Assembly (NCBI RefSeq): GCF_020745735.1
Contig: NC_083435.1
Coordinates: 13,671,201-13,735,200 of the forward strand
Direction: 5' to 3'
Source: Hemiscyllium ocellatum
Taxonomy: Eukaryota
Length of the DNA stretch: 64,000 nt
Part shown: positions 181-63,020 of the stretch, piece by piece
Layout of the letters: every line of letters starts with the position of its first letter
How positions within the stretch are numbered: position 1 is the stretch's first letter
Translations under genes and position numbers: made by a program
The notes under the pieces: generated by a model
Database searches by the model: none
Seen by the model: only the letters and a program-made list of their open reading frames with translations
Told to the model about the DNA's origin: nothing

Positions 181-437
181 CAGAAACTTTGAATTTGTCT
201 CCTGTACATTAAGCCCAAGAAAATTTATTTTTTCATCACACAAGCTTCTGAAGCCAGAAATAGTCGAATGAGCATCTGCTAAATTATTTCTAATGCAATT
301 ATTACCCTTTTTCAATGGACCCATTATTTTCACAACGTCATGGACTGAAGGGGAGTTGCTCTCCCATCTTTTCAGCGAGAATGCTGCTCCATGAAAACAG
401 ACATTACGACTACGGCTCAAAGTGTAGGATTTCATTG
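181..437 (-). pseudogene. Decayed NCR3/NKp30-like V-J exon (copies at about 14197-14454, 28675-28931, 44537-44803)
   Basis: Acceptor ttttag|CA in phase 1. The translation aligns by eye with the V exon at 57133-57474: TLS(C/R) vs TLNC (unit 2 keeps TGT), GAAF-S vs GAAY-W, ENNSP vs DNNP, NNCIRNNLAD vs NNRIFINISD, and VQETNSKF (one base change each from GQGT) vs GNGTKLEV. The A strand is missing and key Cys/Trp residues are lost. Confidence 0.65.
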
Positions 438-679
438 CTAAAACATTAAAAATATTTTAATTTGGAATTGGTCACATCCTCGGAATTTTGTAACCATTAA
501 CAGTATGTACCAAAGCAAGCCATTACCATGGGTGCTAAAATTTGAAAATTTGCATAATGTAACAAATATCCTAGCGTTCACATAGAGGATTGTAATAATT
601 CTCAATTTGTACAAATATCCGAATAATAGTTCAGGAGCTATTCGTTGTGATGGAGCTAGATAGGATAAATTTAACTCAC

Positions 680-752
680 CAATGCAGAGTGCAAAAGAAA
701 CCAGCTGCATAAAGGCAATTCGCTGGATTATCCACATCGTCCATTTGCCCAT
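680..752 (-). pseudogene. Leader (signal peptide) exon MGKWTMWIIQRIAFMQLVSFALCI of the array receptor gene (copies 14697-14767 with a 2-bp deletion, 29174-29246, 5' half only at ~45359-45396)
   Basis: ATG, 24 codons, then G|GTGAGT (phase 1). The last 10 codons MQLVSFALCI|G match MQLIFFPLMV|G of the leader at 62960-63020 in register, with 21/31 identical bases and the same donor. Confidence 0.75.
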
Positions 753-1315
753 AATAAAGATATGCAGTCTTTAAAAGTGTAGCCCCTAAATAAACAGTCT
801 CAATACATGGGCGTGTACGGAATAATTTGTGGTCTATCTTTGTGGGCGTATAGATTTTCTGTCATTGTACTTTGCAGAGGGAAATGGCCCAACCACAAGA
901 TCTTCAAAATAGAGGTCACCAAATAAAATGCCACATTACTAGCTATTTTGGAAATTAAAAAGCAGAGGCAATATTTCAATGTAAATGAACCCTTCGTGCG
1001 GCTGTGTGATTTTGCTGTACACCAATGTTAGGTTTCAATAAATTTCAACATTGTTCGCTGTAAATGGACGGAAACTCACAATCTAGTAGCATTTGGAAGT
1101 GTTCTGACAGTGAGTCAATAAATAAAAACAACTTACTCAGAGGTCCATTCATCGGACTCACAGTCCATGGAAACAAATGTTAAACAGAGCCCACGACAAC
1201 AAAATTGAATTCACTCCTACAGCATTCCAAAAGCAGAAGGTCAAATGCATGCATGTGAACCATTGAAAGGTGGTTTTAGTTAGATCATTAGTTTAATGCT
1301 AAGGTCGACTCTTAG

Positions 1316-1630
1316 CGGGGCCTGGTGCCTTAGTGACTTAGTGGTTAACCTTGCTACCTCACAGTGCTAGAATCCCAGGTTCAATTCCAGTCTCGGGCTG
1401 TTGCCTCTGTGGAGTTTGCAAGTTCTCCCGTGTCTGCGTGGATTTCCTCCCACCATACAAAGGTGTGCAGGTTATGTGGATTAGCTCTGCTCAATTGTCC
1501 ATAGGGTTAGTAGCATTAGTCAGCTGTATATGTAGTGTACGGGAATGGGTCTGGGTGTGTTTCTCTTGGTAGGGTCGGTGTGGATTTGTTGGGCCGAAGG
1601 GCCTGTTTCCAACCAGTAGGAAATCTAAAC
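1316..1630 (+). mobile_element. HE1-like V-SINE (copies about 15329-15640, 29797-30085 with 5' deletion, 45958-46272)
   Basis: tRNA-derived head (tagtggtt A box, ggttcaattcc B box), V-domain tgtggagtttgcaagttctcccgtgtctgcgtgg, and CR1-like tail gccgaagggcctgtttcc. Confidence 0.85.
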
Positions 1631-2099
1631 TTACCCAGTTGGTAACGGTAACACTGCTGGTCACTTTAAAATGTCAAGCATGTGACAACACCATTCTACA
1701 AATAAGACACTACCCTAGATTCAAAACAAAATCTTTAACGACAGCGTCTAAATGCATGCAAACTGCTGTTGACTTTCCTGGTGATTAAATATTTAATTGT
1801 ACCCGACAGCCACGGCCTTGCTCTGTTAATGTTTTTTAAAAGTCGGAGCAATTTTAGCTGACACTACCACGTGTAAACGTAAATTTGCACTGAGTGGACT
1901 GTGGTCGTTTTTCAAAAACTGCTTTTTAAACATTCTTTCACACATCCTGAGTCTCTCTGAAAAGACCATAATGCGATTCCCCTCGCAATTCACACTTGAG
2001 CTATGTGGCACTTTTGGATAAGTGCAACAACGTTTTGAGTCTCAAGGTTCAATTCGACTAGAAGGAGTAAATATGACACTTTCCTACAAGTTCTTTCTT

Positions 2100-2415
2100 T
2101 ATTATGATATATCCATGGTAACTGAGCGTGTGATTAGCTTCAAGTGAATCTCTTTTTTAAAAATGCAGTTTACATTCCAACAGTTTTCTTGATGGGATTT
2201 GAGTGTTAGTATGGACATCTGGTTATCTGGCCCAGTCACACGGTTTTTATGCCAACATCTTCTACAAGAAAAGAAATACAGAGTTTTGACATACCAACGG
2301 TGAGCAATGGCGACATGGTTCCAAGTCAAGATGTTAAGGTGTCTGTCTTGGACAGGGATGGCAGTTATTGGTGCTTGCATGCATTTTCTGCCCTTGCTGT
2401 TCTGGCCAAAGTACC
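2100..2415 (-). pseudogene. Second decayed V-set Ig exon (copies about 16100-16415, 30554-30869, 46750-47047)
   Basis: Acceptor ttactag|GG in phase 1, in frame with ORF 2102..2437. ITAIPVQDRHLNI matches ITATEGQSVTLNC of the intact V exon in register. It is followed by RWY, HKNRV (cf. YEARV), SILTLKS and a frameshifted G-M-Y-T-C remnant (ggaatgtaacctgt in unit 2). The 3' end is uncertain. Confidence 0.55.
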
Positions 2416-2909: not shown

Positions 2910-5900
2910 AAGAAATCGTGAGACCTGGACATCGCTGGCTACCCAGCATTTATTGCCCATCCCTAATTGCCCTTGAGAATGCGGCGGTGATCTGCCTTAT
3001 TGAACCGCTACTGTCCATATACTGTAGGTAGACTCATAATACCATGAAGGAGAGAGTTCCAGGATTTTGAACAGGTACAGTGGAAGAACAATGAGATAAT
3101 CCCAAGTCAGGACGGTGTGTACCTTGGAAGGGAACATCCAGATGGTGGCGTTAACATGTAGCTGCTGCATTTGTGCTTCTTGATGGAAGTGGTCATGGTA
3201 TGGAAGCTACTGCTTAAAGATGTTGGGTGACTTTCTGCTGGGCATCTTGTAGCTAATACATACTGGAGCTACTGAGTGGTGAAGCATCGGTATGGATGTT
3301 AGTGAATGTTCTGCTAATCAAGAGAGACGTTTTGCCCTGAAATGTCGGTAGTGATGGAATCAGCGATGGCAATGCCGTTGAATGCCTTAGGGGTGGTGGT
3401 TCGACTGTCTGTTATTGGAGGTGATCATTGCCTGGCATTTATGTTGTGCAGTTGTTACCTGGCACTTTTTGCTCTATACTTGGATATTGAAAACAGTTTC
3501 TTGCATTTGGACATGGATTACTTGAGTCACGAATGGTGATACCATTGGTGAAGATTCCCACATCTGACCTTATAATGGAGGGAAGGTCATTGATGAAGCA
3601 ATTGAAGATGGTAGGGCCTGGAATACTAACCTGAGGAACTCCAGCAAATATGACCTAGGATTGAGCCAATTGAACTTCAACAACTACAGTTTTGAGCAGA
3701 GTGGCGAGGAGAGAGGGTGGAGAGGAGTGAGGGCTGCCGGGAAATTTTTAAGTGGGTGAAATCTGGTGTCTGGCATTGAACCTGGCACCGATGCTCAGAA
3801 AGGAAGGTGGGAGGAGGGGGAAGAATAGAAAAGCACTAATGGTAGGGAACTCAATCGTTAGACGGATTGACTGGATATTTTGTGGTCAGGAACGGGACTG
3901 TCGGAAGGAATGTTGACTCCCCAGTGACAGAGTCTGTGTTGTCGCCGATCGGTTTGACAGGATTCTGAAGGGGGAGGGTGAACAGCCAGAAACCGTGGTA
4001 CAGAAACAGGCAGAAAGGGATTCAGGATCTGAAAATTGACTACAGAGAGCTAGGTTGAAACGTGAAGAGCAGGACGAGTAGAGTAGTGTTCTCAAGTTTG
4101 TTACTGGTGCCACGAAGCAGTGAGGGGAGGAACAGTCAGCAAGTGTAGTTTAACACGTGGTTGGGAGGCTGGTGGTGGATGGAGGGTTTCAGATACTTAG
4201 ATCATTGGGATGCCTTCAGGGGAAGTTGGGGCCTATACAAGCAGGACCAATTGCACTTGAATTGGAGGGGCACAAATGTCCTGGGTGGGAGATTTGTCTG
4301 TGTGGTTGGGGAGTGTTAAACTAGTTTGGCAAGGGGGTGGGAACCACAGTTACTTATCTGAGAGGGAGTAGTTGCAGATGGGGAAGTGACAGGATGTTGT
4401 GAATCTATCAGGAAGGTTTTTCATGTGATGAAACATAGTGATCATTTAAAGTGTATTTGCTTTTACGCAAAGAGTGTCAGAAATAAGAGTGACGAACGGT
4501 GAGTACGGAGCAGTACTTGGGCCTATCATGTTGTGGCCATAACGGAGACATGTGTTTCACAGTGGCAGGAATGGTTGCTAGATGTTCCAGGGTTTAGAGC
4601 GTTTAAAAAAAAAACAAGGAGATTGGAAAAATAGGAGGGGGTATAGCATTGCTAATCAGAGGGTGCATCACAGCTACAGAAACGAAGGATGTTGAGGAAG
4701 GTTTGTCTACTGAGTCAGTGTGGGTGGACGTTAGGAACAGAAAGGAAGCAGCCACGTCATTGATTCTTTTCTTCTAACGACCTCCAAATAGAAGTAAGGA
4801 GATTGAAGAACTCATAGGTCGACAGATTTTGGGGAAATGCAGATGTAGATAGGGGAAACCATAAATGAGTTATTTGCTTCGGTCTTTACGAAGGAAAGAG
4901 ACCTTGTTGTGAATGAGCAGTTTAAGGAGCTGAGTTATGAACTAGAACAGATCATGATGATGAAGCAGAAGTGCTGAGAGGTTTGACAAACATTAGGATT
5001 GCTAAATCCCCAGGCCAGACCAGGTTTATCCAAAGTTGCTCCAGGAAACAAGAATGGCGGTTGCTAAGCATGATGGCAAAGATCTTTGTTTCCTCACTAT
5101 CAATGGGAGTTATACCGGCAGATGAGAAGGAGGTGAATGTTCTTCCTCTTCTTAAGAAGGCGGATAGGGAAATTCCTGACAGTTACAGACCAGTCAGTCT
5201 TACGTCTGTGGTCAGCAAGGTTTTGGAAAGAATTCGGAGGGATAGGATCTGTGACTATGTGGAAAAGCATAGAGTGATTAAATGCAGTCAGCATGGCTGT
5301 GTGAGGGGCAGGTCGTGCCTAACTAATCTTATTGAGTTCATTCAGGCAGTGACGGGACAGGTCAATGAAGGTCATGCAGTGAATGTGGTGTATATGGACT
5401 TCAGCAAGGCTTTTGATAATGTTCCCAATGGTAGGCTCATTCGTAATGTCAGGAGGTATGGGATACAGGGAGATTTGGCTATCTGGATTCAGAATTTGTT
5501 GGCCGACAGAAGGCAGAGAGTGGTTGTAGATGGAAAGTATTCTGTCTGAATGTCAGTAGTGAGTGGTGCTCCGCAGGGCTCTATTTTTAGATCTCTGCTG
5601 TTTGTAGGCTTTATAAATAACTTGGATGAGGAGGTTGAGGTGTGGGTTAGTAAATTTGCCGATGACACAAAGGTTGGACGTGCCATTGATAGCATTGAGT
5701 ACTATTGCAGTCAGTAGCGCAAGGCAGACTGGATGCAGAGCTGCGCTGAGAAATAGCAGATGGAGTTCAACCTGGATAAATGCGAAATGGTGCATTTTGG
5801 AAGGTCGAACTTGAAAGCTGGATATAGGATTAAAGACAAGGTTCTTGGCAGCGTGGAGAAACTGAGGGATCCTGACGTTCAAGTGCATAGATCCCTCAAA

Positions 5901-7290
5901 GTTTCCACCCAAGTGGACAGGGTTGTTAAAAAAAACATATGGAGTTCTGCCTTTCATTGACAGAGGGATCGAGTTTAAGCGCAGCAAGGTTTTGCTTCAG
6001 CTCAACAAGACTCTCGTGAGACCACACTTGGAATATTGTGTTCAGTTCTGGTCCCCATATTATAGGAAAGATACAGAGAATTGGAAAGGATGCAAAGAAG
6101 GTTTACCAGGATGGTACCTGAAGTTGAGAACTTGTCTTGTGAAGAGAGGTTGCCTAAGCTCAGACTTTTCTCTCTCTGGAGAGAAGCAGGAAGAGAGGTG
6201 ACCTAATCGAGTTATCTAAGGTAATGAGAGGCTTGGATAGAGTCAATAGCCAGTGACCTTTCCCCAGGGCAGGATTGACAGGCACGAGGGGTCATTGTTT
6301 TAAGATAATAGAAGGAAGGCACAGTGGAGATGTCACAGATAGGTTCTTTATGCAGAAAGTTGTGAATGCCAGCGGTGGTGATGGAAGCAGAGTCATTAGG
6401 GACACTTAAGCACCTGCTAGACATGCACATGGACGGCGGTGAATTGAGAGGGTGCATATGTTCGGTAATTTTATCTTAGACTACGAATATCCTCGACACA
6501 ACATCGTGGGGTGAAGGGCCTGATCTGTGCTGTACTTTTCTACTTTCTATGTTCTATGTTCTAACCGTCTACCAACCAGCAGAGAGTATACCTCATGAGT
6601 GCCATAAATTTCAGTTTGTTCTGGCTCCTTGATCAAGGTCAAATGCGGCCATGATGTCAAGGGTTGTCACTCTCACTTGAACTCTGAAATTCAGTTCTTT
6701 TCTCCATGGTTGTCATGAGGTCGAGAGCTGAGTGACCTAGTGGAATTCAAACTGGGCATCAGTGAGAAGGTTGTTGCTAAGTCAATCATCCGTGATAGCA
6801 CTGTCTTCAATCTCTTTGCTAATGATTGGGAGGAGGGTGGTGGTGCATTAAATTGACTCTGTTGGATGTGTCCTGCTTTTCGTGTACAGGATATAATCTG
6901 AGCAATTTTCGACATTGTTGGGTAGAGTCAGTGTTATCCCTGAACCGCTGCAGATTGACTAGGAGAGTAATACGTTCTGAAGCACAAGTCATCTGTACTA
7001 TTATGGAATTTCGTCGGGGTCCATTATTTTTGCAGTGCTCAATGTCTCCAAACGTTTCTTGATATCGTATGGAGTAAATCTAAGTGAACACTGACATCTG
7101 CGATGCTGGGGGCCACTGGAGGAGACCCAGTTGGATCATCCAATCAGCACATATGGCTGAAGATTTTACGATTGTTTCAGATATACCTATTGCACTGGTG
7201 TGTTGGACTTCTCTATCATTGAGAATTGAGACATATTTGAAGGCTCTTCCCCCAATGAGTTGTTCAATTGCCGACCACCATTCAAGACGG
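2910..7290 (-). mobile_element. Old non-LTR retrotransposon of L2/CR1 type, split in two by a CR1 insertion (2910-3688 and 6564-7290; copies about 16915-21275, 31370-35727, 47208-51250)
   Basis: Minus-strand RT-like peptides (ITDHLLSNNLLTDAQFEFHQGHSAPDLIT). The two halves join seamlessly (caactaca | accatctacc) when the inner element is removed. Confidence 0.8.
3689..6563 (+). mobile_element. Degenerate HER1/CR1 LINE with part of ORF1 (SGNH-esterase-like), endonuclease and RT (copies 17685-20551, 32139-35003, 47649-50500)
   Basis: ALMVGDSIVRRIDR (ORF 32167..32358), YRPVSLTSVV, VVYMDFSKAFD and CEMVHFGR peptides, and the 3' tail ttctatgttctatgttcta. Many stops and frameshifts are present, and an internal deletion after the endonuclease start is shared by all four copies. 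Confidence 0.95.
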
Positions 7291-9722: not shown

Positions 9723-9833
9723 CTGTAGGTCCCCGCAGCACTCGAACTGTCAAGAATATAATGAGCAGACCTATCAACGTTAGACCGCCGAGTAAAATTG
9801 GTGTAATGTCAGTCTTTGTTTCCACTATGACTC
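9723..9833 (-). pseudogene. Transmembrane exon (G)VIVETKTDITPILLGGL(T/A)LIGLLIIFLTVRVLRG(P/T)T of the array receptor gene (copies 23701-23811, 38157-38267, partial 12676-12772)
   Basis: aattgcag|GA ... ACA G|GTTT(A/G)T; 111 bp, phase 1-1, no stop. About 21 uncharged residues are followed by R-V-L-R. Confidence 0.75.
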
Positions 9834-10097
9834 CTGCAATTAATAGCATGACCACATAGTTTGCGATTCATATTGATAACGACTGACCAATTAAATGACG
9901 CAGTTTCTGTTTTATAAAAAAAATGTTATCAGATCAACGGAACATGATTATTTTGCAGGAAATGGGTGAAGGGAGTTATGGGTCGCGTATTAAAATTTAA
10001 GCTAATTGGCCAAAATAAATTTAAATACACATCGAAAGCGAAAGCCGGTCGGGAAATGGCAACTTGAAGTAAAGGGAATGGCCGCACCATCGCGTAA

Positions 10098-10168
10098 GCG
10101 CCGCTAGTGTAATGGTATCATGCAAGATTCCCATTCTTGCGATCCGGGTTCGATTCCCGGCCGGCGCA
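10098..10168 (+). tRNA. tRNA-Gly(CCC), copy 1; C7:C66 acceptor-stem mismatch and only a TTT terminator
   Basis: GCGCCGC-TA-GTGT-AATGGTA-TCAT-G-CAAGA-TTCCCAT-TCTTG-CGAT-CCGGG-TTCGATT-CCCGG-CCGGCGC-A folds as a cloverleaf and matches the vertebrate Gly-CCC GCGCCGC family as I recall it. Confidence 0.9.
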
Positions 10169-10250
10169 GTGTAGTACTTTATAAAACCAGGAAATATGGG
10201 TTCTGAAGGTCGAAAGCTGCAACTGAAGTCGCTGGTGAAACTCAGCAAAC

Positions 10251-10592
10251 GTCAGAGTCGACATTTCGAGCACTGTGACTCTGCTTTCATTTCACAGGTG
10301 AAGCAGGACCTGCCGAGTTTCGCCAGCAATTCCGGATTTTCTGGACGGTTGAGGAGTGATTTCAATCGCAGAGGCTTGTGAAAGGCAAAAGAGACCCAGC
10401 GTCAGAATAAGGTCAACACTGGAATTCCTTGAGAAGGATCAGTATCAGAAAGGGTTAATGTCAATGGTCAAAACATGGTGGATAAGTGCACTGTTAGGTC
10501 AAGCTAGGAAAAGAGGCAAGTCAAGGAAATGGGTCTTTGTGGGACAACATCAAGGTCAGTTTCTAGTCTTGTGCTTGTCTCCACTAACACCT
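10251..10592 (-). pseudogene. Possible heavily decayed Ig-like exon upstream of the TM exon
   Basis: Acceptor ttcaattgcag. A 342-bp span to a GT carries SLTC, TGA at the Trp position (+16), LRLKSL and FTC (74 codons after the first Cys) in one frame with stops. Other frames give competing readings. Confidence 0.3.
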
Positions 10593-10709
10593 CTGCAATT
10601 GAAATATTTCTCAACACCCTTCGTTTCTTGTGAGTTGCAAATATACTAGTTGGATTCAACAGATCTGCCGGTCATCAGGACAACGTTTTACATACGCTGA
10701 CTGACTTCG

Positions 10710-12675
10710 GGGATCAGTGAAGAAAAAAAGCTTCACATAAATCCCCAGGACCTGATCAAGTGTACCCGAGAACTCTGTGAGAAGCTAAGGAGGTGATTCC
10801 TTTGCTGAGATATTTGTGTCATTGATAGTCACAGGTGAGGTGCCAGAAGACTGGAGGTCGGCTAACGTGGTGTCACTGTTTAAGAAAGGTGGTAAGGTCA
10901 AACCAGGGAACTATAGACCAGTGAGCCTGACGTTGGTGATGGGCAAGTTGTTGGAGGAAATCCTGAGGAACAGGATGCACGTGTATTTGGATAGCTCAGG
11001 AGTATTTAGAGGTAGTCAACATGGTTTTGTGCGTGGGAAATTATGTCTCACAAACTTGTTTTTTTTAATGAAGTAACAAAGAGGATTGCTGATGGAAGGG
11101 CGGTAGGCATGATCTATATGAAGCTGAAAATGTGTTGCTGGTTAAAGCACAGCAGGTTAGGCAGCATCCAAGGAACAGGAAATTCGACTTTTCGGGCCAG
11201 AGCCCTTCATCAGGAGTGGTGTATATGGACTTCAGTAAGGCATTCGGCAAGGTTCCCCACGTGAGATTGGTTAGTAAGGTTAGATCTCATAGAATACAGG
11301 GAAAACTCGCCATTTGGATACAGAACTGGCTCAAAGGGAGAAGACAGAGGGTGGTGTTGGCGGGTTGTTTTTCAGATAGGAGGCCTTTGACCAGTGGAGT
11401 TCCACAAGGATTTGTGCTGTGTCCACTACCTTTCATCATTTATAGAAATGATTTGGATGTGAGCATAAGAGGTATAATTTGTACGTTTGCTGACGACACC
11501 AAAATTGGAGGTGTAGTGGACAGCAAAGAAGGTTACCTCAGATTACAATGGGATCTGGATCAGACGGGCTAATGGACTGAGAAGTGGCAGATGGAGTTGA
11601 ATTTAGATAAATACAATTTGCTGCCTTTTGGGAAAGCAAATCTTAGCAGGACTTATTCACTTAATGGGAATGTTCTGGGCAGTGTTGACAGACCTTTCAG
11701 TACAGTTTCATAGCTTGTTGAAAGTGGAGACGCAGGTAGATAGGAGAGTGAAGAAGGCGTTTAGTATGTTTTCCTTTATTGATCAGAATATTAACTACAA
11801 GACTTGGGTGGTCATGTTGCCGCTGTACAGAACACTGGTTAGGCCACATTTGGATAATTGTGTGCAATTCTGGTCTCCATTCTTTCGGAAAGATGTTGCG
11901 AAACTTGAACGGGTTCAGAAAAGATTTGCAAGGATGTTGCCAGGGTTGGAGGATTTGTGCTATGGGGAGGGGTTGAATATGCTAGGGTTGTTTTTTTCTG
12001 GAGCGTCATAGACTGACGGGTGACCTTATAGAGGCTTATAAAATCATGAGTGGCATGAATAGGATAAATAGACAAAGTCATATACGGACGTTAGTAACGC
12101 GTTTAATGAGGTTCTGCATGGTAAACTAATGGAGAAAGTGAAGTCACATGGTTTTCAAGGGTTCTAGCTAGGTCGGTAAAGAACTCGTCGCGCAATAAGA
12201 GGCAGAGAGTAGTAATTGAAGGGATTTCCTCAAAATGGAGAAAGGTGACCAATTATGTTCCGCAGGGGTCAGTGTTGTGGCCACTGTTGTTTGTAATATA
12301 TATAAATGATCTGGAAGAGGGCACTGTTGGCATGGTCAGCAAGTTTGCAGATGACACGAAGATTGGTGGAGTAGCAGAAAGTCTAAGGGTCTGTCAAAGA
12401 ATACAGGAGGATATACATAGATTGGAGAGTGGCAGATTGATTTCAATCCAGACAAATGTGAGGTGATGCATTTAGGGAAGACTAATTCAACAGAGAATTA
12501 TACCTAGAGGGCATAGGTTTGTTGTGAGAAGGGAAAGATATTTTCATGCAGAGGGTGGCGCATGCATGGAATTAGATGCCAGAGGAAGTTGTGGAGGCTA
12601 GTACAATTCCTATGGATAGGAAGGGTTTGGAAGGGTATTGACGTGTGCTGGCAGATGGGACTAAATAGGGTTGGG
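10710..12675 (+). mobile_element. Degenerate CR1 RT fragments (two adjoining pieces; copies about 24690-26600 and 39140-42445)
   Basis: GEVPEDWRSANVVSLFKKG, NYRPVSL, YMDFSKAF and FADDTKIGG peptides. The ctctatgactctatga tail is present in units 2 and 3. Confidence 0.92.
11121..11215 (-). mobile_element. Short Penelope-like (pLTR-type) insertion with a hammerhead-like core; unit 1 only
   Basis: The minus strand reads CTGATGA-A-GGGC-TCTG-GCCC-GAAAAGTC. The segment is absent at the matching CR1 position in units 2 and 3. Confidence 0.7.
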
Positions 12676-13036
12676 AGCACTCGAACTGTCAAGAATATAA
12701 TGAGCAGACCTATCAACGCCAGACCGCCGAGTAAAATTGGTGTAATGTCAGTCTTTGTTTCCACTATGACTCCTGCAATTAATAGCATGACCACATAGTT
12801 TGCGATTCATATTGATAACGACTGACCAATTAAATGACGCAGTTTCTGTTTTATTAAAAAACAGTTATCAGATCAACGGAACATGATTATTTTGCAGGAA
12901 ATGGGTGAAGGGAGTTATGGGTCGCGTATTAAAATTTAAGCTCATTGGCCAAAATAAAATTAAATACACATCGAAAGCGAAAGCCGGTCGGGAAATGGCA
13001 AATTGAAGTAAAGGAAATGGCAGCCCCAGCGTTTAA

Positions 13037-13107
13037 GCGCCGCTAGTGTAATGGTATCATGCAAGATTCCCATTCTTGCGATCTGGGTTCGATTCCCGGG
13101 CGGCGCA
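13037..13107 (+). tRNA. tRNA-Gly(CCC), copy 2; intact
   Basis: Full cloverleaf with one T50:G64 wobble, CCC anticodon, and a T5 terminator at 13116-13120. Confidence 0.95.
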
Positions 13108-50900: not shown

Positions 50901-53877
50901 ACTGCTGTAGATTGGGTAGGAGAGTAACACGTTCTGAAGCACAAATCATCCGTACTATCCTGGAATTTCGTCGGGGTCCATTATTTTTGCAGTCTTCAAT
51001 GTCCCCAAACGTTTCTTAATATCGTATGGAGTAAATCTAAGTGAACACTGACATCTGCGATGCTGGGGGCCACTGGAGGAGACCTAGTTGGATTATCCAA
51101 TCAGCACATATGGCTGAAGATGTTTACGATTGTTTCAGATATACCTAATGCCCTGGTGTGTTGGACTTTTCTATCATTGAAAATTGAGACATATTTGAAG
51201 GCTCTTCCTCCAATGAGTTGCTCATTTGTCGACCACCATTCAAGACTGGATCTGACAGATCTGCAGAGATTTGAAAAGAAACAATGAAAGGTTAACGACA
51301 GAAAACTGGAAAGACAAAAATGAAACGCTCATGCGGAGAACACGTGTGAATGCCATTGCTAGAGTGGTCTTCTTCAACTCTGCAGTATTTCTATGATCTT
51401 AAAGCCCTTGCATATCTAGTTCGAGTACATCAATGGATTGCAAGATCCTGCCTCTGACTCCTCGCCAAAATACTGCTGTGTCTGTGTATATAGCATGTGA
51501 TGTCACCAGATGGCGCTAGTGGCTTTTTTTTGGATAGAGCGATAAATATGTCGGTATTTTCTATCGAATTTTCCGGAGGCCTCATTGAATGCATCTCAAA
51601 CAGGTGGAACAATGGATTTAGGCTTTCTGGCTTAGCGACAGGGATCCTGTCACTGTGCCGCAAGAACACAAACTCCTTGTTCTATTTTATTTGATCAATC
51701 TGTTCGTGTATGTTATTAAAGACCTCTGAAACATGCGAGATTTGATTTCAGGCCTTTTGCCTTAGTGGTTGCACCAAAAGGACCATTATGCTCCTCACTG
51801 TAGCGTCTCCCGTCCATCCACCTTCAGCTTCTTGAACAAATACCGTGCCTCCATCATAAGGTCAGAAGTGGAGATGTTGATTCAACATCATAGTTCAGCA
51901 CTACTCATGATTCCTGAGCTACTGAGTAGACCACGCGCAAATGCAGGACGACCTGAAAATACCAAGGTATGGTCCAAGGTGTGGCTCAGGCCACACAAGG
52001 TCAAAGCAATGACTGTCGCCAACAAGTAAGAATCGCTGCTGGACATGCAACGGCCTTGCTACTAATGAATCCCTTCGATCAGAAGCCAAACTAGGAGGAA
52101 CAATAATCTGCTCGATTTTTGCACTCACCTAAATGTACGTTCGTACAAAAGCGTTTATCAAAGCTGGAGCGCCGAAACAAAAGAACAAGAGAAGACTCGC
52201 AGATCATTAAAGTTTCATTGTTTTAAATTATTTCATCCCTATAAGGCCGCGTTACCTTTGCTGACTGGGGGAGAGATGGGAAGGTGAACTTCATGTAACT
52301 TTCGGATGGAGAGATTGTGTAAGAAATGTGCAATCCTGGCATGAACATTACCTTAACTATAATTTTGCAATCATCTTGTTTCAACTGCTGCCGGCCTATT
52401 CAAATGTTCCACAAGCTTCCATCACTAGCCGCTTGGTTATTGTATTTCCTTCCGCTTACAGTTGGTAGCAATACCTGCCGCTTGCAAGATCGAAACTTAA
52501 CGTTCCCGTCACAAATTGTGTCAGCATTCCTCCTTGAAGATTCCTATCGAAGCCTACTCTAGGAAGGCCTTTGTCATCTGTTCTTTGTATAGGCATCGGT
52601 TTTGTCTCATTAATATGTTGCGCATCATCATACTTTGTTTCCCTGCGTTAACTGTGGCTGTATAATGCGAAATTGTTGTGAAATTAGAACGTTTTGGTTT
52701 TGCATACATCCTTCTTTTACGTAAGAGAAAAATCAACTGGTTACCTGGGGTCCTTTTTCAACAGTTAAATTAATAATATTCAGTTAACTGGCTCAGTATT
52801 GCCGTGCCTACTTTAATCACATAAGAAGATCTGTATTATAGTTTAAGGTTCTAATTCATGATGTCTTGTTCATAATGCCAAAAGCATCTCAAGTATTACA
52901 AAAGATATAGTTCACATTAATGATTAGATACGGCATTGAGAAAAGGGAAATTCGGTGTTCCCTTGTCAAATTAGAAATGTTGTTGCAATCATTATTTCAA
53001 CCCTGGCACGACCGGAGAATCATGGTGTGGTGGCTTTGTCACCTACAGTAATAATACAGATAATACTTAAGGGGCACAGGACTCAAATCCCACCACAGCA
53101 ACTGGAGACGTTTAAGTGTAATTAATGAATCGAAACGGCAAAGTTAGGCTTAGCATCAGCTATGATAAAGGCTTAGCCGTCTTCCCAAACGCCCTAGTCA
53201 GCAGATTGTTGTGGAAGCAAATATGAATAACAAATTCTCAACAACAGCCCATCCCATCAAATAGAGAAATTCCCTCAAAGACCACACGCCCACATAAGAA
53301 ACTGATCACGTCTCAGATCACGTCTGACCGTTCCAGGTAGGACCACAAGAGAAAACTATGGGAGGGTCCGTTCAATAACTAGTATTCAATCATACTCCAG
53401 ACGCCTTTTACTCTTTCGATGTTTGTTTTCCTTTGGTTTTTATCACGTCATGGCCTCAAAATCACTAGGTGTGTTTTACATTTAAACAAGGAAAGTTGAC
53501 GTCTGTTCTTTCTATCAAGCCAACAAAGTCTTAATGTTCGATTGCAGAAACAATCACAGATTACAAAGGGATACATTATTATCTCCTTGTCGATTGGCTG
53601 TATCTTCTTTAGTCAGCTTTGGAAATATGAAGTTATGACATCATATGCATAACAAGTCAGTGACAGCACATGAACCAGCAGTTAAAGGATAAAAAGTGAG
53701 AATGTGATTTTTTTTTAAACAATCTTTTTTAAAGTAAGAATGAAACTTGGCACAACTTTCGTAATTTCAAATCATGCAGTGTTTCTCTGCAACATACTTG
53801 CCTTAGTTTTGGTAATAAGGGATAAAACAGGATTTTGAAAATTTGAAAAGATATAGATGATTGTCTTGATTAAAGTA

Positions 53878-54075
53878 GTGCTGTAAAAGCACAGCAAGTC
53901 AGGCAGCATCCGAGAGCAGGAAAATCTACGCTTCGGGCAAAAGAAATTCATGGTGAAGGGCTTTTGCCTGGAACGTCGATTTTCCTGCTTCTCGAAGCTG
54001 CCCGACCTGCGGTGCTTTTCCAGCACCAGCCTAATCTTGACTCTAATCTCCAGCATCTTCTGTATCCACTTCTGC
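53878..54075. mobile_element. Penelope-like foldback (inverted pLTR-type) element with a decayed hammerhead-like core
   Basis: The left arm aaaagcacagcaagtcaggcagcatccgagagcaggaaaatc is mirrored by gattttcctgcttctcgaagctgcccgacctgcggtgctttt. It belongs to the same family as 11121-11215 and 61485-61612. Confidence 0.7.
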
Positions 54076-54767
54076 CTAGCCAAAAGTCATGCTTATTAAA
54101 GGCCCATTGATAATAAGTGGTTTGGTTGAAAGGTCAGTTTTTGCCTGACCTACTATTTCCAATGCGTTCAGAAGGTCATGAAACATATTTTGCAATGGAA
54201 AATAGAATCCACTTCACAATGCTTGACTATTTCATCCTATAAGCAAATTGCAGAGAAAGAAAAATAATACATTTGAATGATGCAGTTCCAAGAGTACTAA
54301 ATTAAAATCACAACTTTTCATAATATTGCAAGTACAACTACTTCATACTCCACAATATAAGTCCAAAAATATGCTTAAATAATTCCTTATATTTCGATTG
54401 GCCAGAAACTGCTGGTTCTTTCCAATTGATGATGTCAACATTTGTTCATAGCAACCTTCCAGATCTGTAATTTTCTAATTTCCAGAGGTAGCACAATTAA
54501 AGCACAATGAAGAGATATCTTGTAGTTCCATTCAAAATACAGTTAAAAGAACTTAGATGTTTGTAAATGTTCTGCCCTGTTTAACACAAAGCATGGGGGT
54601 AAAGAGGTACTCACTTCAGTTTAGTCAGCCTTACAACAGTCATGGGAAAACTCCTAGAAACCATTATCAGCAACACAACAGAATATTGATATCGCACCTG
54701 ACCAAGTTGCACCAATTTAATAAACCATAACATTTAGGTGTTTAGTTGCATTTGTAATGATACTTAC

Positions 54768-54896
54768 CATTGCATTTGTATTCCAGTTTGCAAATTAGTA
54801 GAATAACGAGTATAAAAACCAGCAAGATTATTGTTGTTCGAAGTACAAATGATAAAGCAGTCTTGAGTTCTACGCAATTTGATATGTTTATCTTCC
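54768..54896 (-). CDS. NCR3: NCR3-like receptor exon 3: stalk and transmembrane (R)KINISNCVELKTALSFVLRTTIILLVFILVILLICKLEYKCN
   Basis: tttcag|GG ... AAT G|GTAAGT; 129 bp, phase 1-1, in frame with the V exon. An Arg sits at the N-terminal side of the TM helix, as in NKp30 (LLLRAGFY). Confidence 0.85.
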
Positions 54897-55569
54897 CTGA
54901 AATGATTAAACACAAGAACCATTTCATTTCTACCAGTTTAATAGCTAGGGTCAAAAATAAGTATCATATACAGAGTTGTAAAATATTCTAGTCCTCGTCA
55001 TATGAATAAAAATACTTTAAGTGGTATCCAACTTATATCATCTTTCTTGTACATGGACTCTCAAATGTCAGCCCCTTCCATTCACTAAAAAATAGATGAA
55101 TGGTTACTTGATCATTTCATGAACACACTGACAGACGCATATTGCAAGAAACTGATATTTCTGAAACTATGTTTGTTTCTTGAATTGCATTATTTCTAGA
55201 ATCTCAGTTGGATCTAATTGCATTCATAATTTCACAATTTCGTGTGCAACCTCAACATAAATCGTTTCGACGATAGAAATCTCAGTCAACTTTCTTCTAG
55301 CAATTATTTTGATATCACTCTGTGTCGGGAATTAAATGTTCACACAAGTCAGTCCTCAGCGATAGCCACATTATTCACATTTTGCTCGACAATACTCAGC
55401 TCTGTGAACCGTGCATTTAGAAAAGCTTCAAATATATTAAGTTGCTTTATGAAATATTGGGCAGACAAAAGAAAATGAGAAATGATATAATAAAGTAACA
55501 GTTAACATTAAGCTTCATTTACTTGCTATACTTCTTGAAGTAAATCGATTTCCATATATGATTATTGGT

Positions 55570-56720
55570 GTCATAGAGCATGAACACAGACCCTTTGCTC
55601 CAGTTCGTCCAATTCGATTCCCAATTTCAAGTAATTCCATTTGCCTACGTTTCGCCCATATCCCTCTAAGTATGTCCTATTCTTGTACCTGTCCAAATAT
55701 CATTTCAATATTGTAAATATATCTCCCCGTCTAGCACTTCCTCTGGCAGTTCACTCCTCATATATTTACCACCCTCTGTGCGAAGCAGTAGTCAAGTATG
55801 TTCCTTTTACATTTTCCCCCTTACCCTAAACCTATGCTATGTAGATTTGAATACCCCCACACCTCCCTCCCCCCTTCCTCACCCCGGGAGAACAGCTTTT
55901 CAATTTACAGTTTCCACGTCTTCATGATTTTATAAATCTCTAACATCACCCTCAACCTCCTACGTTCCAGGGAAAGATGTCATGTCCTATCCAGCTTCTC
56001 CTTGTAGCCCAAACCCTCCAGTCCGGGTAGCATCCTTGCAAATCATTTCTCCACGCTTTTACAATTTCATAGTATCCTTCCTATGGCAGGCGAGTGGAAC
56101 TGTACACAGTAGTCCAAAAGTGGCCTCACCAATATCCTGTACAGTCGCAACTTGAAATCCCAACTCCTATATTCAATGACTAATGAGGGAAGCCATCCTA
56201 TCTAACTGGGACTTTCAAGGACCTGAACCGCTTGGTCTCTCTAATGAACAACACATCCAAGGGCCCGACCATTAACTTTTGAAGTCCTGTCCTGGTTGGT
56301 TTTACCAAAACTCAACACCTAACATTTAAATTAAACTCTATCTGCTACACCTAAGCTCATTAGCCCAGCTGATCATGATCCTGCTGTACTATTGGATAAC
56401 CTTCTTCCCTGTTCAATGTATCACCAATTGCAGCATTGTCCGAAAACTTTCCAGTTATGCATCCTATATTTTCATCCGAATTATTTATTTGAAAGGAAAG
56501 CGACAATGGACCCAGCACTGATCCCGACAGAACACCACTGGTTGCCGGCTTCCAGACTAAAAAATCAATCGCTGATTACAAGCCTCTAATCCAAAAATTA
56601 CCTTGTACGACCACCCCCTGTCTTCTACCGCCAATCCAATTTTGTATTAATCCAATTGGCTAGCCCTCCCTGGCTCCCATGTGATCTAACTTTACTAACC
56701 AGTCCGCCCCGCCGAACTTT
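55570..56720 (-). mobile_element. Decayed CR1 3' fragment in intron 2
   Basis: Starts with an inverted CR1 3' end (tagagcatgaacacagaccctttg), followed by antisense RT-like sequence. Confidence 0.7.
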
Positions 56721-57132
56721 CTCGACGTGCTTATATTGTTTCAAATTTAACGATCATGTAGGAACAGGTTTAATAACGAAACTCTTTAAAGCATACGTCA
56801 CATCATTCAACTCGAATGCATATCATTCATATATAAAATTATTGCACCTGGTTAGTTGGCGGCATACATTTATTGACAACAATTTAGGACAGATTTTAGC
56901 GTTTTGTTAAGGTAGTATTGAATAGTCTCATTTTACCGCATCTATTTCCCTCCATTGGTCATGCCGTCCAGTGCTACTTGCGAAAGACGTCAATTGGCTG
57001 CATTGCTTTAAGAGAATCCGCTAAATGAGTGGTACGGTAATTAAAACTGAGAAAACCGGATCAAATCAATCTTGCATCTGTACAATTCAAGCAGTTTTCA
57101 TTTGCAAAACACTATGTCTATTTATTACTTAC

Positions 57133-57474
57133 GCTTCACCTCCAGTTTGGTGCCGTTTCCATGTCCTTTCCCTGCTCCAACTACAGTTATATGACAGTAA
57201 TAAGTGTCCGAGTCTTTCTCAGTCAAGTCGGAGATATTAATGAAGATCCTGTTGTTGGCAAATGAATCACTGTCTGATGTCTGCACCCGAGCTTCATAAA
57301 GGGGGTTATTATCCAATTTGTACCCATCCAGATTGCCCCGTGTCCAATAAGCTGCACCAATCAGAGATAGAGTTCCTTCAAAATCCAAGGCACAGTTCAG
57401 CGTCACCGACTGCCCCTCTGTTGCAGTTATTAATGGAGGGAACTGGAAGACAGTGACGTTCATCTTCGTACCCA
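57133..57474 (-). CDS. NCR3: NCR3/NKp30-like receptor exon 2: germline-joined V-J Ig domain (113 codons)
   Basis: tttcctatcag|TG ... AAG C|GTAAGT; 342 bp, phase 1-1. Motifs are EGQSVTLNC, IGAAYW, DSDTYYC and VVGAGKGHGNGTKLEV (cf. human NKp30 EGSSAFLPC, IGSVTW, VLGLGVGTGNGTRLVV). The symbol denotes family membership, not proven orthology. Confidence 0.9.
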
Positions 57475-58662
57475 CTGATAGGAAAATAATAACATGATAA
57501 ATGATGAATTCCATTCCTCTCTGCTGCTCTCATACAATTTTCGGTGGTAACTGTAAATATCATGTTACATTATATAAGTACGTAGAAAATGAACAGAGCA
57601 GCAGATAATGGATAGCCAAACATGCGCAAAGAAGTACTTTTTAAAACGTCTTTCGCAAGCCAGTCATGCTCTGGAAAAGCTAAGCAAGTTACATGCTGGT
57701 TGTGTTGTACCATATCTCTGTCTACTCTTCTGAACCAAAATTAAATGCAAGTGCAAATAGGTTACCTCTGATACTGAATTAAATGGTATTCATGTTTCTA
57801 TTATCTCTTGTCACTGGATGGTTATTTTCTAATTCGTAATATTTTCGAGCAATTTGAGAATGTTCTTGCTACATTTCGCAAACGGAGCCCCTCAATTGAC
57901 AAACAATGGCCCACGTTTGTAAAACCCGCTACAAATATATAGCTCCCTCAAGAAGCAAGAATTTGCCACTTGAATTTAACTGATATAGCAGGACAGGTGA
58001 GAATCTGGATTGCATAAACATGGAAAACTAGAAATGGGAAACTGTTGAACGGAGGGCTAAAGATAATTTTGTTTAATGATTGAGGATCAGGAAGCAGAGA
58101 AATCCGAGGAAGTGCAATATGGATTTAGGGACCGTGTTCGAAATGCACATGCAAGTAAGTTCGATGTTCTGCAGACAGACGTTGGCGGGTGGAACTATAT
58201 TATAATGCCAAGAATACAGGCCTTTCCTCAACAGGACGAAGATTGAAAGCCTGATATCCGTGGTTAGAAAGTTGTCTAAATGGTAATGAGTAGGGAGGAG
58301 CATACTGAGGAGACAAAGAAGAAATCCACTTTGTTAGAATAAAGTTGCTATATTTGACTTTGAGCTGTTCCTTTATATAGTAACAACTTGGCTTGATAAA
58401 GTACATATTTACGGGTATTTTCATCGCTTTTTCCTTTTGTCCAGGAAGTGACCAGCCTGTCATAGAAGCTGCAGCTTGAAGGACATCACCCTTTCACAAG
58501 CATGGCTAAGGAGAATATTCACTCTCTTTAACTAATCTGTTTTGCTAATGTTATGAACGTACTATCGAGGCATTCGTACGCTGGAGTAGGACTGAAATCT
58601 CAGGAAGGGACGCTACCACAGCACCACAAAACTTCTCATGTAATTTTTCAAAGGCCAAGTTT

Positions 58663-58937
58663 GGCGGTATTGTGGCTTAGTGGTTAGCATTGCTACCTCA
58701 CAGCAGTAAGGACGCAACGTTCGGTTCCAGCATCGGGGAACTATCTGCTTGGAGGCTGCACATTCTCTCTGTGCGCTTTTTCCCATTGTCCAAAGATGTG
58801 CAGGTCAGGGGAACTGGCTGTGCGAAATCATCTATAGTATTAGGTCCATTTCGTAAGAGGATGGGTTACTCTTTGGAGGGTCGGTGTGGACTTGTTGGCC
58901 TAAGGTGCCAGTTTCCATACTGGAGGGGAATCCAATC
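58663..58937 (+). mobile_element. HE1-like V-SINE in intron 1
   Basis: gtggcttagtggttagcattgctacctcacagc head, decayed V domain, and CR1-like tail. Confidence 0.8.
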
Positions 58938-59584
58938 ACCATAACTAATTGTTGGGAGTGAATTTACAAGCTGGTTGCAGAAAATGGGAGGGCATAAGAC
59001 GAGTGAAAGTGGAGAATTCAATTATTATACTATACACTGGGATATTACTAGTGAGCCAAGAAAACTGGGGGATAAATTGCTGACAAGTAAACAAAAAAAA
59101 CTGTCACAATTAATTTGTTCTGGTCTGAGAATGAAATAAAGCTGGTTTGTACCTTGTTAATATTAAACCCTTGTTCCTATACACGTCTCCGATCTATCAG
59201 CTCTGAGACAAAATATGCGTTATTGACTTTGCTATTCACCTGTCCAATAAATGTAATATTTTATGCGCATGCGGTACACATCCAGAGTTCTCTGCTATTG
59301 CAGACGTTTTGGAATGGCAAACTTGATTTTATGCTATCTCTCCGTGTATTATCTCACACTTCTCTGCAATGAACAGCTAGTCACTCCAACAAGTTGTCAA
59401 TGTCATTTTACACAATACTGAGCACGGTTTGCAATGCTTCCAAGTTATGTGTTATGGTGAGAGGTGTAGGATATACAGATATATATTAGGTTTAATCGTT
59501 GGATTTCAAAGCTGGATGGGTCAGTTAACTTTTTTTTAAAAGTAACTACCAGAGAGAGGCGTAACCTAGTTGGTCTCCGAGGAA

Positions 59585-61200
59585 CGGGACCTTCTGGAGT
59601 ACAACACAATTGTTAAGTGCAGAAGAAGGCCATTCGTCCATTGTGACTGCACAGACATGTTAATTGAGCATCATTGCCAACATACAACCTCTTGGAGTTT
59701 TTCCCCGATACACTTCCAGCTTATTTTTTTAAATCCAACTCATTATCCAATGCTCTCCTCGATGACTCAATTGTACCGACCTCCACCATCTGCCCTAACT
59801 ATACACTGAGTGGAAAGGTTGTGGTTTACAACACCCTCACTTCTTTTGCAGATCATGCCAAATCTATGTCCTTTTGCTCTTGGTCTGTTTATGAACTGGA
59901 ACGCATTCTCACTGTCTGCTCTATCCAGTCTGCTCGTGAGTGTGAAACCTCCACCAGCTCTCTCTTCGTCTCCTTCTCTTCAAGGAAACGGTCCTATATT
60001 TTTCATTCTTTCCGAATAAGTGAATGTTTGCATTTCTGGAAACATTCTTGTAAACATTTTCTGAAACATTTGGATCCTTCTGATAATTCTGCCCAGAACT
60101 ACATACAATCCTCCTTCTGAAGTCTGACAAGTGTCTTGTACAATTTCAGCATCACCTCCTTGCTCTTATACTCTCTGTTGCATGACACGGTATCAAAACC
60201 TTCTTGGATTCCATATACATCACATCAACGGTGTTACCCTTTACCAAGCCTTTATGTTAACTTTTCAAACAGTCGAGTAAGTTACTTGAGGGTGGTTCGG
60301 TAGCTCAGTGGTTGGCACTGCTGCCTCATGGTCCCAGGTTCGATTCTGGCCTCGGGCGACTGTCTGTGTGGAGCTTGCGCATTCTCCCGGTGTCTGCATG
60401 GGTTTCCTCCGGTTTCCTCCCGCAGTCCAGGTGAATTAGCCACTTTAAATTGCCCATAGTGTTAGGTGCATTAGTCAGAGGGAAATGGATCTGAGTGGGT
60501 AACTGTTCGGAGGGCGTGGACTAGTTAGGCTGAAGGGCCTGTTTCCACACTGTCAGGAATCTAATCTAAAACAGCTGAGGATACAGTATGCTTTGCTTAC
60601 TGTTTTTTTCTCTCTCTGTCTATCCCGCCCCTTCAATGATTTATGCGCGTATGCACCCAGGCCTTTCTGCCATCACAACACCTTCACCCCACCTGAGAAT
60701 TATGCCCTCTCTTTTATATTGCATTTCATTGTTATCCTACCAAAATGCGTCACGTAACTTTTCCATGCACTGAAACGGATCATCAACATATCTGCCTACT
60801 CCATCAATTTGTCGCTATCCTTTTAAGTTTCTGAAACGTCTTTTGCACAGTTTACAATTTTCTAAGTTTTGTGCTATCTGAAAACTTTGAAAGTATCCTG
60901 CACACCAAGAAATATATCATTTATATATATCAAGGAAAGCAAGGGATCCAATAACAGGACCTGGGGAACGCCACTACAAACCTTCCTCCTGCCCCAAAAA
61001 TATCCATTAACAATTACTCTCTTATTCCTATCTTTAAACCAATTTTGCACAATGATGCCAGCAACACATCATCACCTGATGATTTCCTCGTAAGTGTGTT
61101 GCATGACACGATATCAAAATCTTTCTTGGATTCCATATATACCACATTAACATTGTTACCTTTTATCAAGACTTTGTTATATTTTCAAACAGTCGAGAAC
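59585..61200 (-). mobile_element. Decayed CR1 fragment in intron 1, interrupted at 60177-60570
   Basis: Antisense RT-like sequence (tacaatttcagcatcacctccttgctctt ... gtatgctttg) continues across the interruption. Confidence 0.65.
60289..60568 (+). mobile_element. HE1-like V-SINE
   Basis: ggtagctcagtggttggcactgctgcctca head, ggttcgattc B box, V domain and gaagggcctgtttccacactgt tail. Confidence 0.85.
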
Positions 61201-61208
61201 GCTTCTTG

Positions 61209-61656
61209 AGAGTGGCACGGTGGCTGGCACTGCTGCCTCACAGCACCAGGGTGCAAGTTCCGATTCTTGCCTCGGGCGGCTGTCTGTGTGGAGTTTGCAC
61301 ATTCTCCCCGTGTCTCCGTGGGTTTTCTCCGGGTGTTCTGGTTTCCTCCCACAGTCCAAAGGTTGCCAGTCCAGGTGAATTGGCCATGCTAAATTGCCCA
61401 TAGCGTTAGGTGCATTAGTCAGAGGGAAATGGGTCTGGGTGGGTTACTCTTTGGAGGATCGGTGTGGACTTGTTGGTTCGAAGGAGAAAGTGAGGAGGAG
61501 CTTAAAAATGTGTTGCTGGAAAAGCGCAGCAGGTCAGGCAGCATCAAAGGACCAGGAGAGCTCCTGAAGAAGGGCTTATGCCCGAAACGTGGATTCTCTT
61601 GCTCCTTTGATGTTGTAGGTTCGAAGGGCCTGTTTCCACGCTGTAGGGAATCTAAT
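61209..61656 (+). mobile_element. HE1-like V-SINE carrying a nested insertion
   Basis: Full V domain (tgtggagtttgcacattctccccgtgtctccgtgggttt). The tail is split by 61485-61612. Confidence 0.85.
61485..61612 (+). mobile_element. Penelope-like foldback insertion with a hammerhead-like core and a 15-bp target-site duplication
   Basis: Flanked by ttgttggttcgaagg (61470-61484) and ttgtaggttcgaagg (61613-61627). Core CTGAAGA-A-GGGC-TTAT-GCCC-GAAACGTG at 61564-61591. Confidence 0.75.
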
Positions 61657-62130
61657 CATTTCCCCGCCATAATGCTCCCATTTTGCTGCAATGCTCTTAC
61701 AGGTATGTTTTTCTACTTGCTCCCTCCAGTTTTTTGCTGCATATATTATGAGTCATGCAGCTATGCTATTTTTGTTCCTTTTTTCTAGTAAAATCGACTT
61801 CGAACCCCTGCAACTTGACTTTCTGCAACACCACAATATTTACTAATGCTAACCCTTGTCCTTTTATTTATTTCCTTTCTTCACTTTCTGAACACATTCT
61901 AACTAGAAATATTTGACACCCAACTGTGCCATTCTTCACACCATGTTTATATTATATCCACAAATTTACAATTCACACATCTTCACTATGTGCCATATAT
62001 TCACGTGCTACACTAAATTTGATTTAGACTCGATTTCTTTCTTCTTTTATGAGACTCCACCGCGAAAACCACCAACTGTCACTACAACAATATTGGAAAA
62101 ACACCCGTCGAGGGACATAGTTTTTTTTTC

Positions 62131-62400
62131 GTGGCAACGTGGTGGTTCAATGGTTAGCACAGTTCCCTCACAAAAACAAGGAGCCGCGTTCAATTCCAGT
62201 CTTGAGCAACTGTCAGTGTAGGGTTTGCAAATTCTCCCGATATCTACGTGGACCTTCCGTCGATTGTTCCTGTTTCATCACAGAATGGAAGCTAAGTGGG
62301 TTAGCCATAGGAAGCACGGGGTTAGCGGATTTGATCTGAGTGGGATGCACTTGGGAATGTCGGTGCAGAGTCGATCGACCGTGTGGCCTGCCTCCACAAT
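62131..62400 (+). mobile_element. Divergent V-SINE
   Basis: gtggttcaatggttagcacag head, gttcaattcc B box and tgtagggtttgcaaattctcccg V-domain remnant. Confidence 0.65.
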
Positions 62401-62959
62401 GCGTCCTGATTCAATTTGGCTAGTACAGGTGCCATTAAACCGAGAGTCTGTCCTCGAATATAAATCCCACCCCCTACACTATCATTCCAGACATTTATTC
62501 GCCTATCTTATCCTTTTATATTTATACTTAATTGCACATGATCAAAGCCATTTCAAACCAAATGTCAACAAAAAGAATGGAAAACCAATACGTTGAGCAC
62601 AGAACAAAATGGTTCAAAGCAAAACGATGATACTTTTTTTTCAAGATGCAAGTAAATTAAAGACAAAACTCTTTTACATTTTATAAAGTAAGTTTATGGT
62701 GCATAAAAATGCGAATAAGATAGCTTCTGATGGAATATTCGCTGCTTTTAAACTGAAACATTATCTAAACGTTAATAGTATTTTCATTATTCAATTAAAT
62801 GCCAAATATATAAATTATACACTCAAATAAAATAACAGTGATTATAGTTAACTAGGGCATTACATACTAACTACTTGTCTAAATACAATAGAACATCACA
62901 AGGCATCAACTGCTAGATAAAGAGTTGTACATAATAACGAATAATATAAGTTCACTCAC

Positions 62960-63020
62960 CAACCATTAGTGGAAAGAAAATGAGCTGCATTGTCATAAAT
63001 TGCCAAATTAAAGTCATCAT
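62960..63020 (-). CDS. NCR3: NCR3-like receptor exon 1: signal peptide MMTLIWQFMTMQLIFFPLMV
   Basis: ATG, 20 hydrophobic codons, then G|GTGAGT. Phase 1 joins TG of the V exon (Val) in frame. Confidence 0.75.

Follow-up and report, generated by a model that had tools for sequence, protein, structure and literature searches.

The 64,000-nt stretch of the Hemiscyllium ocellatum genome analyzed here (NC_083435.1, positions 13,671,201 to 13,735,200; hereafter the window) contains receptor-like exons of the NCR3/NKp30 family, all of them on the minus strand. We read it, with a probability of roughly three in four, as one functional-looking activating-type NCR3/NKp30-family gene followed downstream by a tandem amplification, rich in transposable elements, covering the 5′ portion of a second gene of the same family. 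Self-comparison of the window by BLAST separated positions 52799-64000, which are single copy and carry the first gene (the flanking gene), from positions 1-52798 (-), which form a tandem array of four copies of a ~14.2-kb unit with an inter-unit identity of 91-97%. The orientation of the exons, the amplified array, and an intact flanking gene with an arginine in its transmembrane (TM) segment and a short tail had been proposed in a first-pass annotation of this DNA, and all were borne out. The same annotation took the array units for paralogues with a tail bearing an immunoreceptor tyrosine-based switch motif (ITSM), paired with the flanking gene; this part was not supported, as no variable (V) exon and no match to exons with immunoreceptor tyrosine-based inhibitory motifs (ITIMs) were found in the array, and the three complete leader-to-TM copies are all damaged.

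The flanking NCR3/NKp30-family gene

The flanking gene is an intact four-exon member of the NCR3/NKp30 family with a predicted splicing pattern, and it is predicted to be of the activating type from its TM Arg and its short, motif-free tail. The leader exon (63020-62960, minus strand) comprises 20 codons plus 1 nt, ends at a GTGAGT donor, and resembles the leader of a nurse shark NCR3 protein (P0005). It is followed by the V-J exon (57474-57133, minus strand), a single, non-rearranging exon of 342 nt that encodes a V-set domain (Pfam E 7.6e-11) with a J-like motif similar to that of human NKp30. The third exon (54896-54768, minus strand; phase 1-1) encodes a stalk with a cysteine and the TM segment with its Arg, and ends at a GTAAGT donor. 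In the terminal exon (starting at 54236 and annotated here as far as 54100, minus strand), only 2 nt are needed to finish a Gly codon before the TGA stop (54234-54232), and the remainder is 3′ untranslated region (UTR). All splice junctions are of phase 1, and the spliced open reading frame (ORF) comprises 178 codons with a predicted tail of ~9 residues.

The closest public relative of the window is a locus of Chiloscyllium punctatum (L002; BEZZ01000537), which aligns with positions 63998-50149 at 91-93% nucleotide identity. In this species, the spliced frame and all four exons with their splice sites are likewise intact; the exons are 96-98% identical, compared to 92-93% for the DNA around them, and both the TM Arg and the two splice sites of the third exon are kept. 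The leader region reaches 98% identity and the terminal-exon block 96%. Parts of the gene can also be recognized in Heptranchias perlo (locus L001), where positions 20-66, 10 kb upstream of an annotated gene, retain the 3′ end of the TM exon, and where the same terminal-exon design, consisting of an acceptor, 2 nt, and a TGA, is found at ~3840. When the coding sequences of H. ocellatum and C. punctatum were compared (63020-54232 versus L002), 18 nonsynonymous and 3 synonymous changes were counted, corresponding to a ratio of nonsynonymous to synonymous changes (pN/pS) of ~1.8. Such an excess suggests diversifying selection or relaxed constraint; a high ratio in exons that are nevertheless better kept than the adjacent DNA fits diversifying selection on a receptor of the natural killer (NK) type.

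The assignment to the NCR3/NKp30 family is based on the V domain. Its top four matches in the PDB were all human NKp30 (E ~1e-9), the next match being about 100-fold worse (2.5e-7); the best structures were 3NOI, 3PV6, and 6YJP, and the alignment spans the glycine-rich J-like motif, which precedes the last strand in both the shark and the human domain. Among protein sequences, the flanking V domain is 90% identical to chiPu_0012136 and 77% to chiPu_0012135 (both from C. punctatum), 72% to nurse shark NCR3 QTT61901, and 62% to a catshark protein, and the closest database relatives of the gene carry the name NCR3. Sequence identity to the V domain of human NKp30 is moderate, the shark stalk differs in having a Cys, and the human gene is single copy. 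Signalling by human NKp30, likewise a short-tailed receptor with a TM Arg, depends on an adaptor, which in mammals is CD3zeta or FcRgamma. By analogy, the flanking receptor would pair its TM Arg with an adaptor bearing an immunoreceptor tyrosine-based activation motif (ITAM). No marker of the major histocompatibility complex was found in the 64,000-nt window.

The tandem array and its eroded exons

The array extends on the minus strand from a proximal end at 52798 to a distal end beyond the window, with junctions between units at 8850/8851, 22854/22855, and 37310/37311. The breakpoint is sharp and, for the first unit, common to C. punctatum. The units are rich in plus-strand fragments of long interspersed nuclear element (LINE) reverse transcriptases, which occupy much of each unit, for example at 4971-6201 and 11132-12011 (Pfam RVT_1, E 4e-12 and 5e-13); related LINE fragments are also present in the first and second introns of the flanking gene. 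At the DNA level, the flanking locus matched the array in interspersed repeats only, and the V exon remained unmatched. The repeat-rich content, together with a 1.3-kb stretch that is 99% identical between two units (1-1305 and 28495-29799), could point to an assembly artefact in which repeats were collapsed or mis-joined. We consider this extremely unlikely: the units differ by 3-9% and carry copy-specific indels and insertions, the window has no N runs, and the first unit with its junction was found independently in the C. punctatum assembly.

Two kinds of receptor exon recur in the array, all on the minus strand. Leader exons were located at 752-684 (copy a, open, its TM partner lying beyond the window), 14767-14701 (copy b), 29246-29178 (copy c, open), and 45396-45358 (copy d). 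An uncharged TM exon, as described in the first-pass annotation, recurs at 9833-9723 (phase 1-1, intact), 23811-23701, and 38267-38157 (intact), and its donor, GTTTAT, is weak. The relatives of these exons were recovered through an exhaustive HMMER search with the flanking V domain, which returned the uncharacterized H. perlo proteins XP_067830067 and XP_067830066 (P0031 and P0155) and a Pristiophorus protein (P0006). The gene for XP_067830066 encodes two ITIMs (LHYSQL and LEYASV) in its last exon, which is preceded by a leader, a V-J exon, a TM exon, and an exon of 30 nt, while the Pristiophorus japonicus sequence UPI00398E9DB9 contains V-J, TM, and a tail (VEYASI) inside a fused model. The genomic V exon of Heptranchias reads on in frame upstream of its annotated acceptor (…IFQFSPFITLT…; L001 13480-13560), so that the first strand of the V domain may be missing from the RefSeq model XP_067830066.

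Array leader copy a together with ~90 nt of 5′ flank is ~82% identical in nucleotides to XP_067830066 (z 34), and the array TM exon is 72-76% identical to the TM exon of the same gene (z 30); by tblastn, the two exons matched the H. perlo gene with E values of 1e-4 and 3e-6. The Pristiophorus protein also matched the array TM exon, and a search for annotated orthologues with P0155 returned H. perlo itself only. The H. perlo genes XP_067830066 and XP_067830067 thus share with the array a homologous leader with its 5′ flank, a homologous TM exon, and the same upstream TM-Arg neighbor. The gene order common to the window and Heptranchias is the TM-Arg gene, its terminal exon, and then the leader of the ITIM-type gene. 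On these comparisons, the array exons are identified as relics of an old TM-neutral, ITIM-type lineage of the NCR3 family, and the earlier description of a shark NCR3-lineage locus shaped by duplication and birth-and-death evolution holds. Regarding the sequence in front of the leader, the ~90 nt 5′ of the ATG (839-753) are ~74% conserved with Heptranchias (L001 9909-10000), and a promoter or 5′UTR may have been retained in every unit.

The likeness between the array and the flanking gene within the window is more limited than the first-pass annotation proposed. A leader in common could be traced only weakly (z 5.2 over 43 nt that take in the splice donor), the TM exon of the flanking gene was not significantly similar to that of the array, and the V-J signature that the array was said to share was not recovered. 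A profile hidden Markov model (HMM) of the family, scanned against all six frames of the whole window, gave the flanking V exon (57457-57134) as its sole V match, at 162 bits, and nothing else above 2 bits. Likewise, the Heptranchias V exon, compared to the window DNA, was 80% identical to its flanking-gene counterpart over 76 nt and left the array unmatched, and neither H. perlo exons 4 and 5, which carry the ITIMs, nor the Pristiophorus tail had a match anywhere in the window. The array therefore differs from the H. perlo and Pristiophorus genes, which have both a V-J exon and an ITIM-type tail, in having neither.

Two candidates for a V exon in the array were considered and rejected. The first is an ORF of 113 codons (V*) that begins after a 250-nt intron in phase with the array leader and is found on the minus strand at 435-94 (copy a, open), 14452-14110 (copy b, frameshifted), 28929-28588 (copy c, open), and 44801-44450 (copy d, frameshifted). 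It had no Pfam match, gave E values of 0.28-2 in BLASTP against the family, scored in the HMM no higher than its shuffles, and was poorly recognized in the protein atlas. When anchored at the acceptor, its first 80 nt agree with the H. perlo V exon at 32-34 of 80 positions, against a null expectation of 19.7 ± 3.9 (p ~0.0004-0.002), and the array V exon may thus be left as a short stub only. The second candidate consists of two weak collinear tblastn matches at 7999-7871 and 7632-7516 (minus strand; E ~0.6 each) to which the family HMM gave no support. These include a stretch resembling the conserved "IFINIS" strand of the family, and could be either chance matches or a very ancient remnant of a V exon.

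The three complete leader-to-TM copies all carry damage. Copy b has a 2-bp deletion that shifts the frame of its leader, a frameshifted post-leader ORF, and an extra, 3′-truncated TM exon without a donor (12772-12675, minus strand). In copy c, the TM exon (23811-23701) has lost its acceptor AG and carries a Gly-to-Asp change within the TM segment. In copy d, the 3′ half of the leader and its donor were replaced by a ~505-bp segment (44861-45364) with a tRNA-Gly-like sequence. Copy a extends past the window edge. The substitutions between copies in the leader, the post-leader ORF, the TM exon, and the tyrosine-containing ORF described below are compatible with neutrality, the counts being small. 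Because the three complete copies are each damaged, the V exon is gone or unrecognizable, and the ITIM exons lie outside the unit or were lost, we infer that the array represents the "death" side of birth-and-death evolution, presumably without expression, and that it supplies no inhibitory partner.

The tRNA-Gly(CCC)-like sequences are themselves a recurrent element of the array. ARAGORN placed them on the plus strand at 10098-10168, 13037-13107, 24069-24140, 38525-38595, and 44864-44934 (Rfam tRNA model, 43-60 bits); the copy at 24069 has the anticodon CTC, and a T-run follows the copy at 44864. Each array unit has one, lying on the strand opposite the TM exon at a distance of ~270 nt from it. 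They stand at the head of the ~505-bp segment (10095-10600) whose copy at 44861-45364 took the place of half a leader exon. Additionally, a single unit has 9737-10290 repeated within it as a 555-bp duplicate (12676-13231) that holds a tRNA-like sequence and the copy of the TM exon that ends 14 nt short of the donor.

Another possibility is that the array exons are still expressed, either as TM-neutral 3′ exons joined to the flanking V exon by read-through, phase 1 to phase 1, or as V-less leader-TM proteins. In its favor, the array follows the flanking gene on the same strand with compatible splice phases, it retains two intact TM exons, and its TM exon and its leader with 5′ flank have diverged unusually little from those of Heptranchias. 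Such use is nevertheless quite unlikely. The nearest intact TM exon is ~16 kb past the flanking terminal exon, the weak TM donor is followed by nothing recognizable, the copies drift neutrally and carry lesions, and no isoform of this kind was present among the related proteins retrieved. Were it true, one V exon would serve receptors of opposite signalling, and the conservation relative to Heptranchias would reflect function.

The TKYDD[A/V] reading frame

The tail that the first-pass annotation assigned to the array genes corresponds to an ORF with the motif TKYDD[A/V], which recurs on the minus strand at 8697-8530, 22702-22535, 37158-36991, and 52642-52475. All four copies are open, with TKYDDA in two and TKYDDV in the other two, and the frame is also open in C. 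punctatum, where the motif reads TNYDDV. Its recurrence was thus confirmed; its status as an exon was not. The frame requires phase 2 at both its entry and its exit, while the array TM exon ends in phase 1, the phase of all exon boundaries that were examined in H. perlo XP_067830066 and in the flanking gene. According to the sequence, a TM exon spliced straight to this ORF would yield a Tyr-free peptide that stops after 29 codons. No bridging exon with reasonable splice sites was detected between the TM exon and the ORF in any unit, relaxed thresholds giving weak candidates only. The changes between copies amount to about 9 nonsynonymous and 2 synonymous (pN/pS near 1), and those relative to the C. 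punctatum orthologue to 9 nonsynonymous and 4 synonymous, at background divergence. A similar tail was present in none of the 157 family proteins retrieved, and the complete tails examined among them have ITIM-type motifs.

The position of the ORF within the repeat accounts for its proximity to the TM exon. The repeat junction lies ~155 nt upstream of it (for example, 8851/8850). In units 1-3, the junction is preceded by the intron following the TM exon; in C. punctatum and in the first unit, which adjoins the flanking gene, it is preceded by the 3′ region of that gene and not by a TM exon. As the latter arrangement is the ancestral one, the adjacency of TM exon and ORF is a by-product of the duplication. 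The TKYDD[A/V] ORF is therefore most likely a chance reading frame rather than an exon of the array gene.

The opposing explanation is that each unit is, or was, a leader-V-TM-Tyr-tail gene through whose ITSM-like TxYxxV tail SH2 phosphatases or adaptors would be recruited, the product thereby serving the flanking receptor as an inhibitory or switch partner. TKYDDV in two copies and TNYDDV in C. punctatum fit TxYxx(V/I), the ORF is open in five sequences with AG and GT at its ends, and the array TM exon is uncharged. We regard this explanation as very improbable in view of the phase conflict, the weakness of the bridging candidates, the departure of TKYDDA from the motif in two copies, a pN/pS of about 1, the lack of a similar tail among the relatives, the duplication junction that separates the ORF from the TM exon, and the absence of a V exon by the family HMM.

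Under simple tandem duplication, the original order would have been the flanking gene, the segment with the Tyr ORF, the leader, (V), TM, and the true tail. The Tyr-ORF segment would once have been situated between the flanking gene and the array leader, and duplication would have placed it after the TM exon. In this species, the second lineage would then be recognizable only by its promoter-proximal region with the leader and by its TM exon; its V exon would be gone or unrecognizable, and its ITIM exons either outside the duplicated unit or lost. A well-kept leader and TM exon despite a vanished V exon would be explained most simply by a recent deletion of V, shortly before amplification.

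Several observations weigh against reading the array as a truncated and amplified relic. Heptranchias is very distantly related to H. ocellatum, and the two species still share 72-82% identity in the TM exon and in the leader with its ~90 nt of 5′ flank; therefore, either function was lost fairly recently, or the exons are still used. The post-leader ORF is open over its 113 codons and phased with the leader in two copies, for which the estimated chance is ~5%. No stop interrupts the Tyr ORF in its four copies or in C. punctatum, and its Tyr is kept. The most distal copy (leader 752-684), which runs off the window, could be complete.

The locus among shark NCR3 genes and paired receptors

The closest described counterpart of the flanking gene, nurse shark QTT61901, shares with it a single-exon V-J domain (72% V identity) and a similar leader. 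In contrast to the TM Arg and ~9-residue tail of the flanking gene, QTT61901 has an uncharged TM segment and a C-terminal ITIM (VEYATI). Other public TM-neutral, ITIM-tailed NCR3 relatives include catshark LOC119976539 (VQYAKV) and the "NCR3-like" models of H. perlo and Heterodontus, so the shark NCR3 family holds both TM-charged and TM-neutral, ITIM-tailed members. Eight divergent NCR3 subtypes are said to have been described in the nurse shark by Kinlein et al. in 2021 (Immunogenetics 73:333), reportedly including QTT61901. Both this study and the nurse shark NCR3 accessions MT914154-61 are referenced by PMC10450919 and PMC12227049. The novelty suggested in the first-pass annotation, which knew of no ITSM-bearing NCR3 relative, is weakened by the public TM-neutral, ITIM-tailed relatives, and the one potentially striking claim, that of an ITSM-tailed relative, was not upheld.

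Paired activating and inhibitory families of the immunoglobulin superfamily, such as KIR, LILR, NITR, and Xenopus XMIV, have expanded by tandem duplication. The H. ocellatum locus resembles them in its clustering on one strand, its tandem duplication, its pseudogene fragments, and the existence of both signalling modes within the family. It differs in that true pairs of the KIR, LILR, or NITR type have near-identical ectodomains, while an ectodomain exon is missing from the array, and its H. perlo homologue has a V domain with only 42% identity to that of the flanking gene. Within the window, no activating and inhibitory receptors with similar ectodomains stand side by side.

Since the tyrosine-motif tail is most likely a chance frame, the locus amounts to an ordinary cluster of receptors under birth-and-death evolution, and the current understanding, in which multigene shark NCR3 families with both signalling modes have already been described, is unchanged. 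The flanking gene provides a cleanly defined activating-type member of the NCR3 family for a hemiscylliid shark, with a one-codon terminal exon that is apparently kept as far as Heptranchias. The locus as a whole shows a synteny of activating-type and ITIM-type NCR3-family genes that has been kept across distantly related sharks, and the array documents the truncation and amplification of one lineage in a fast-evolving receptor family.

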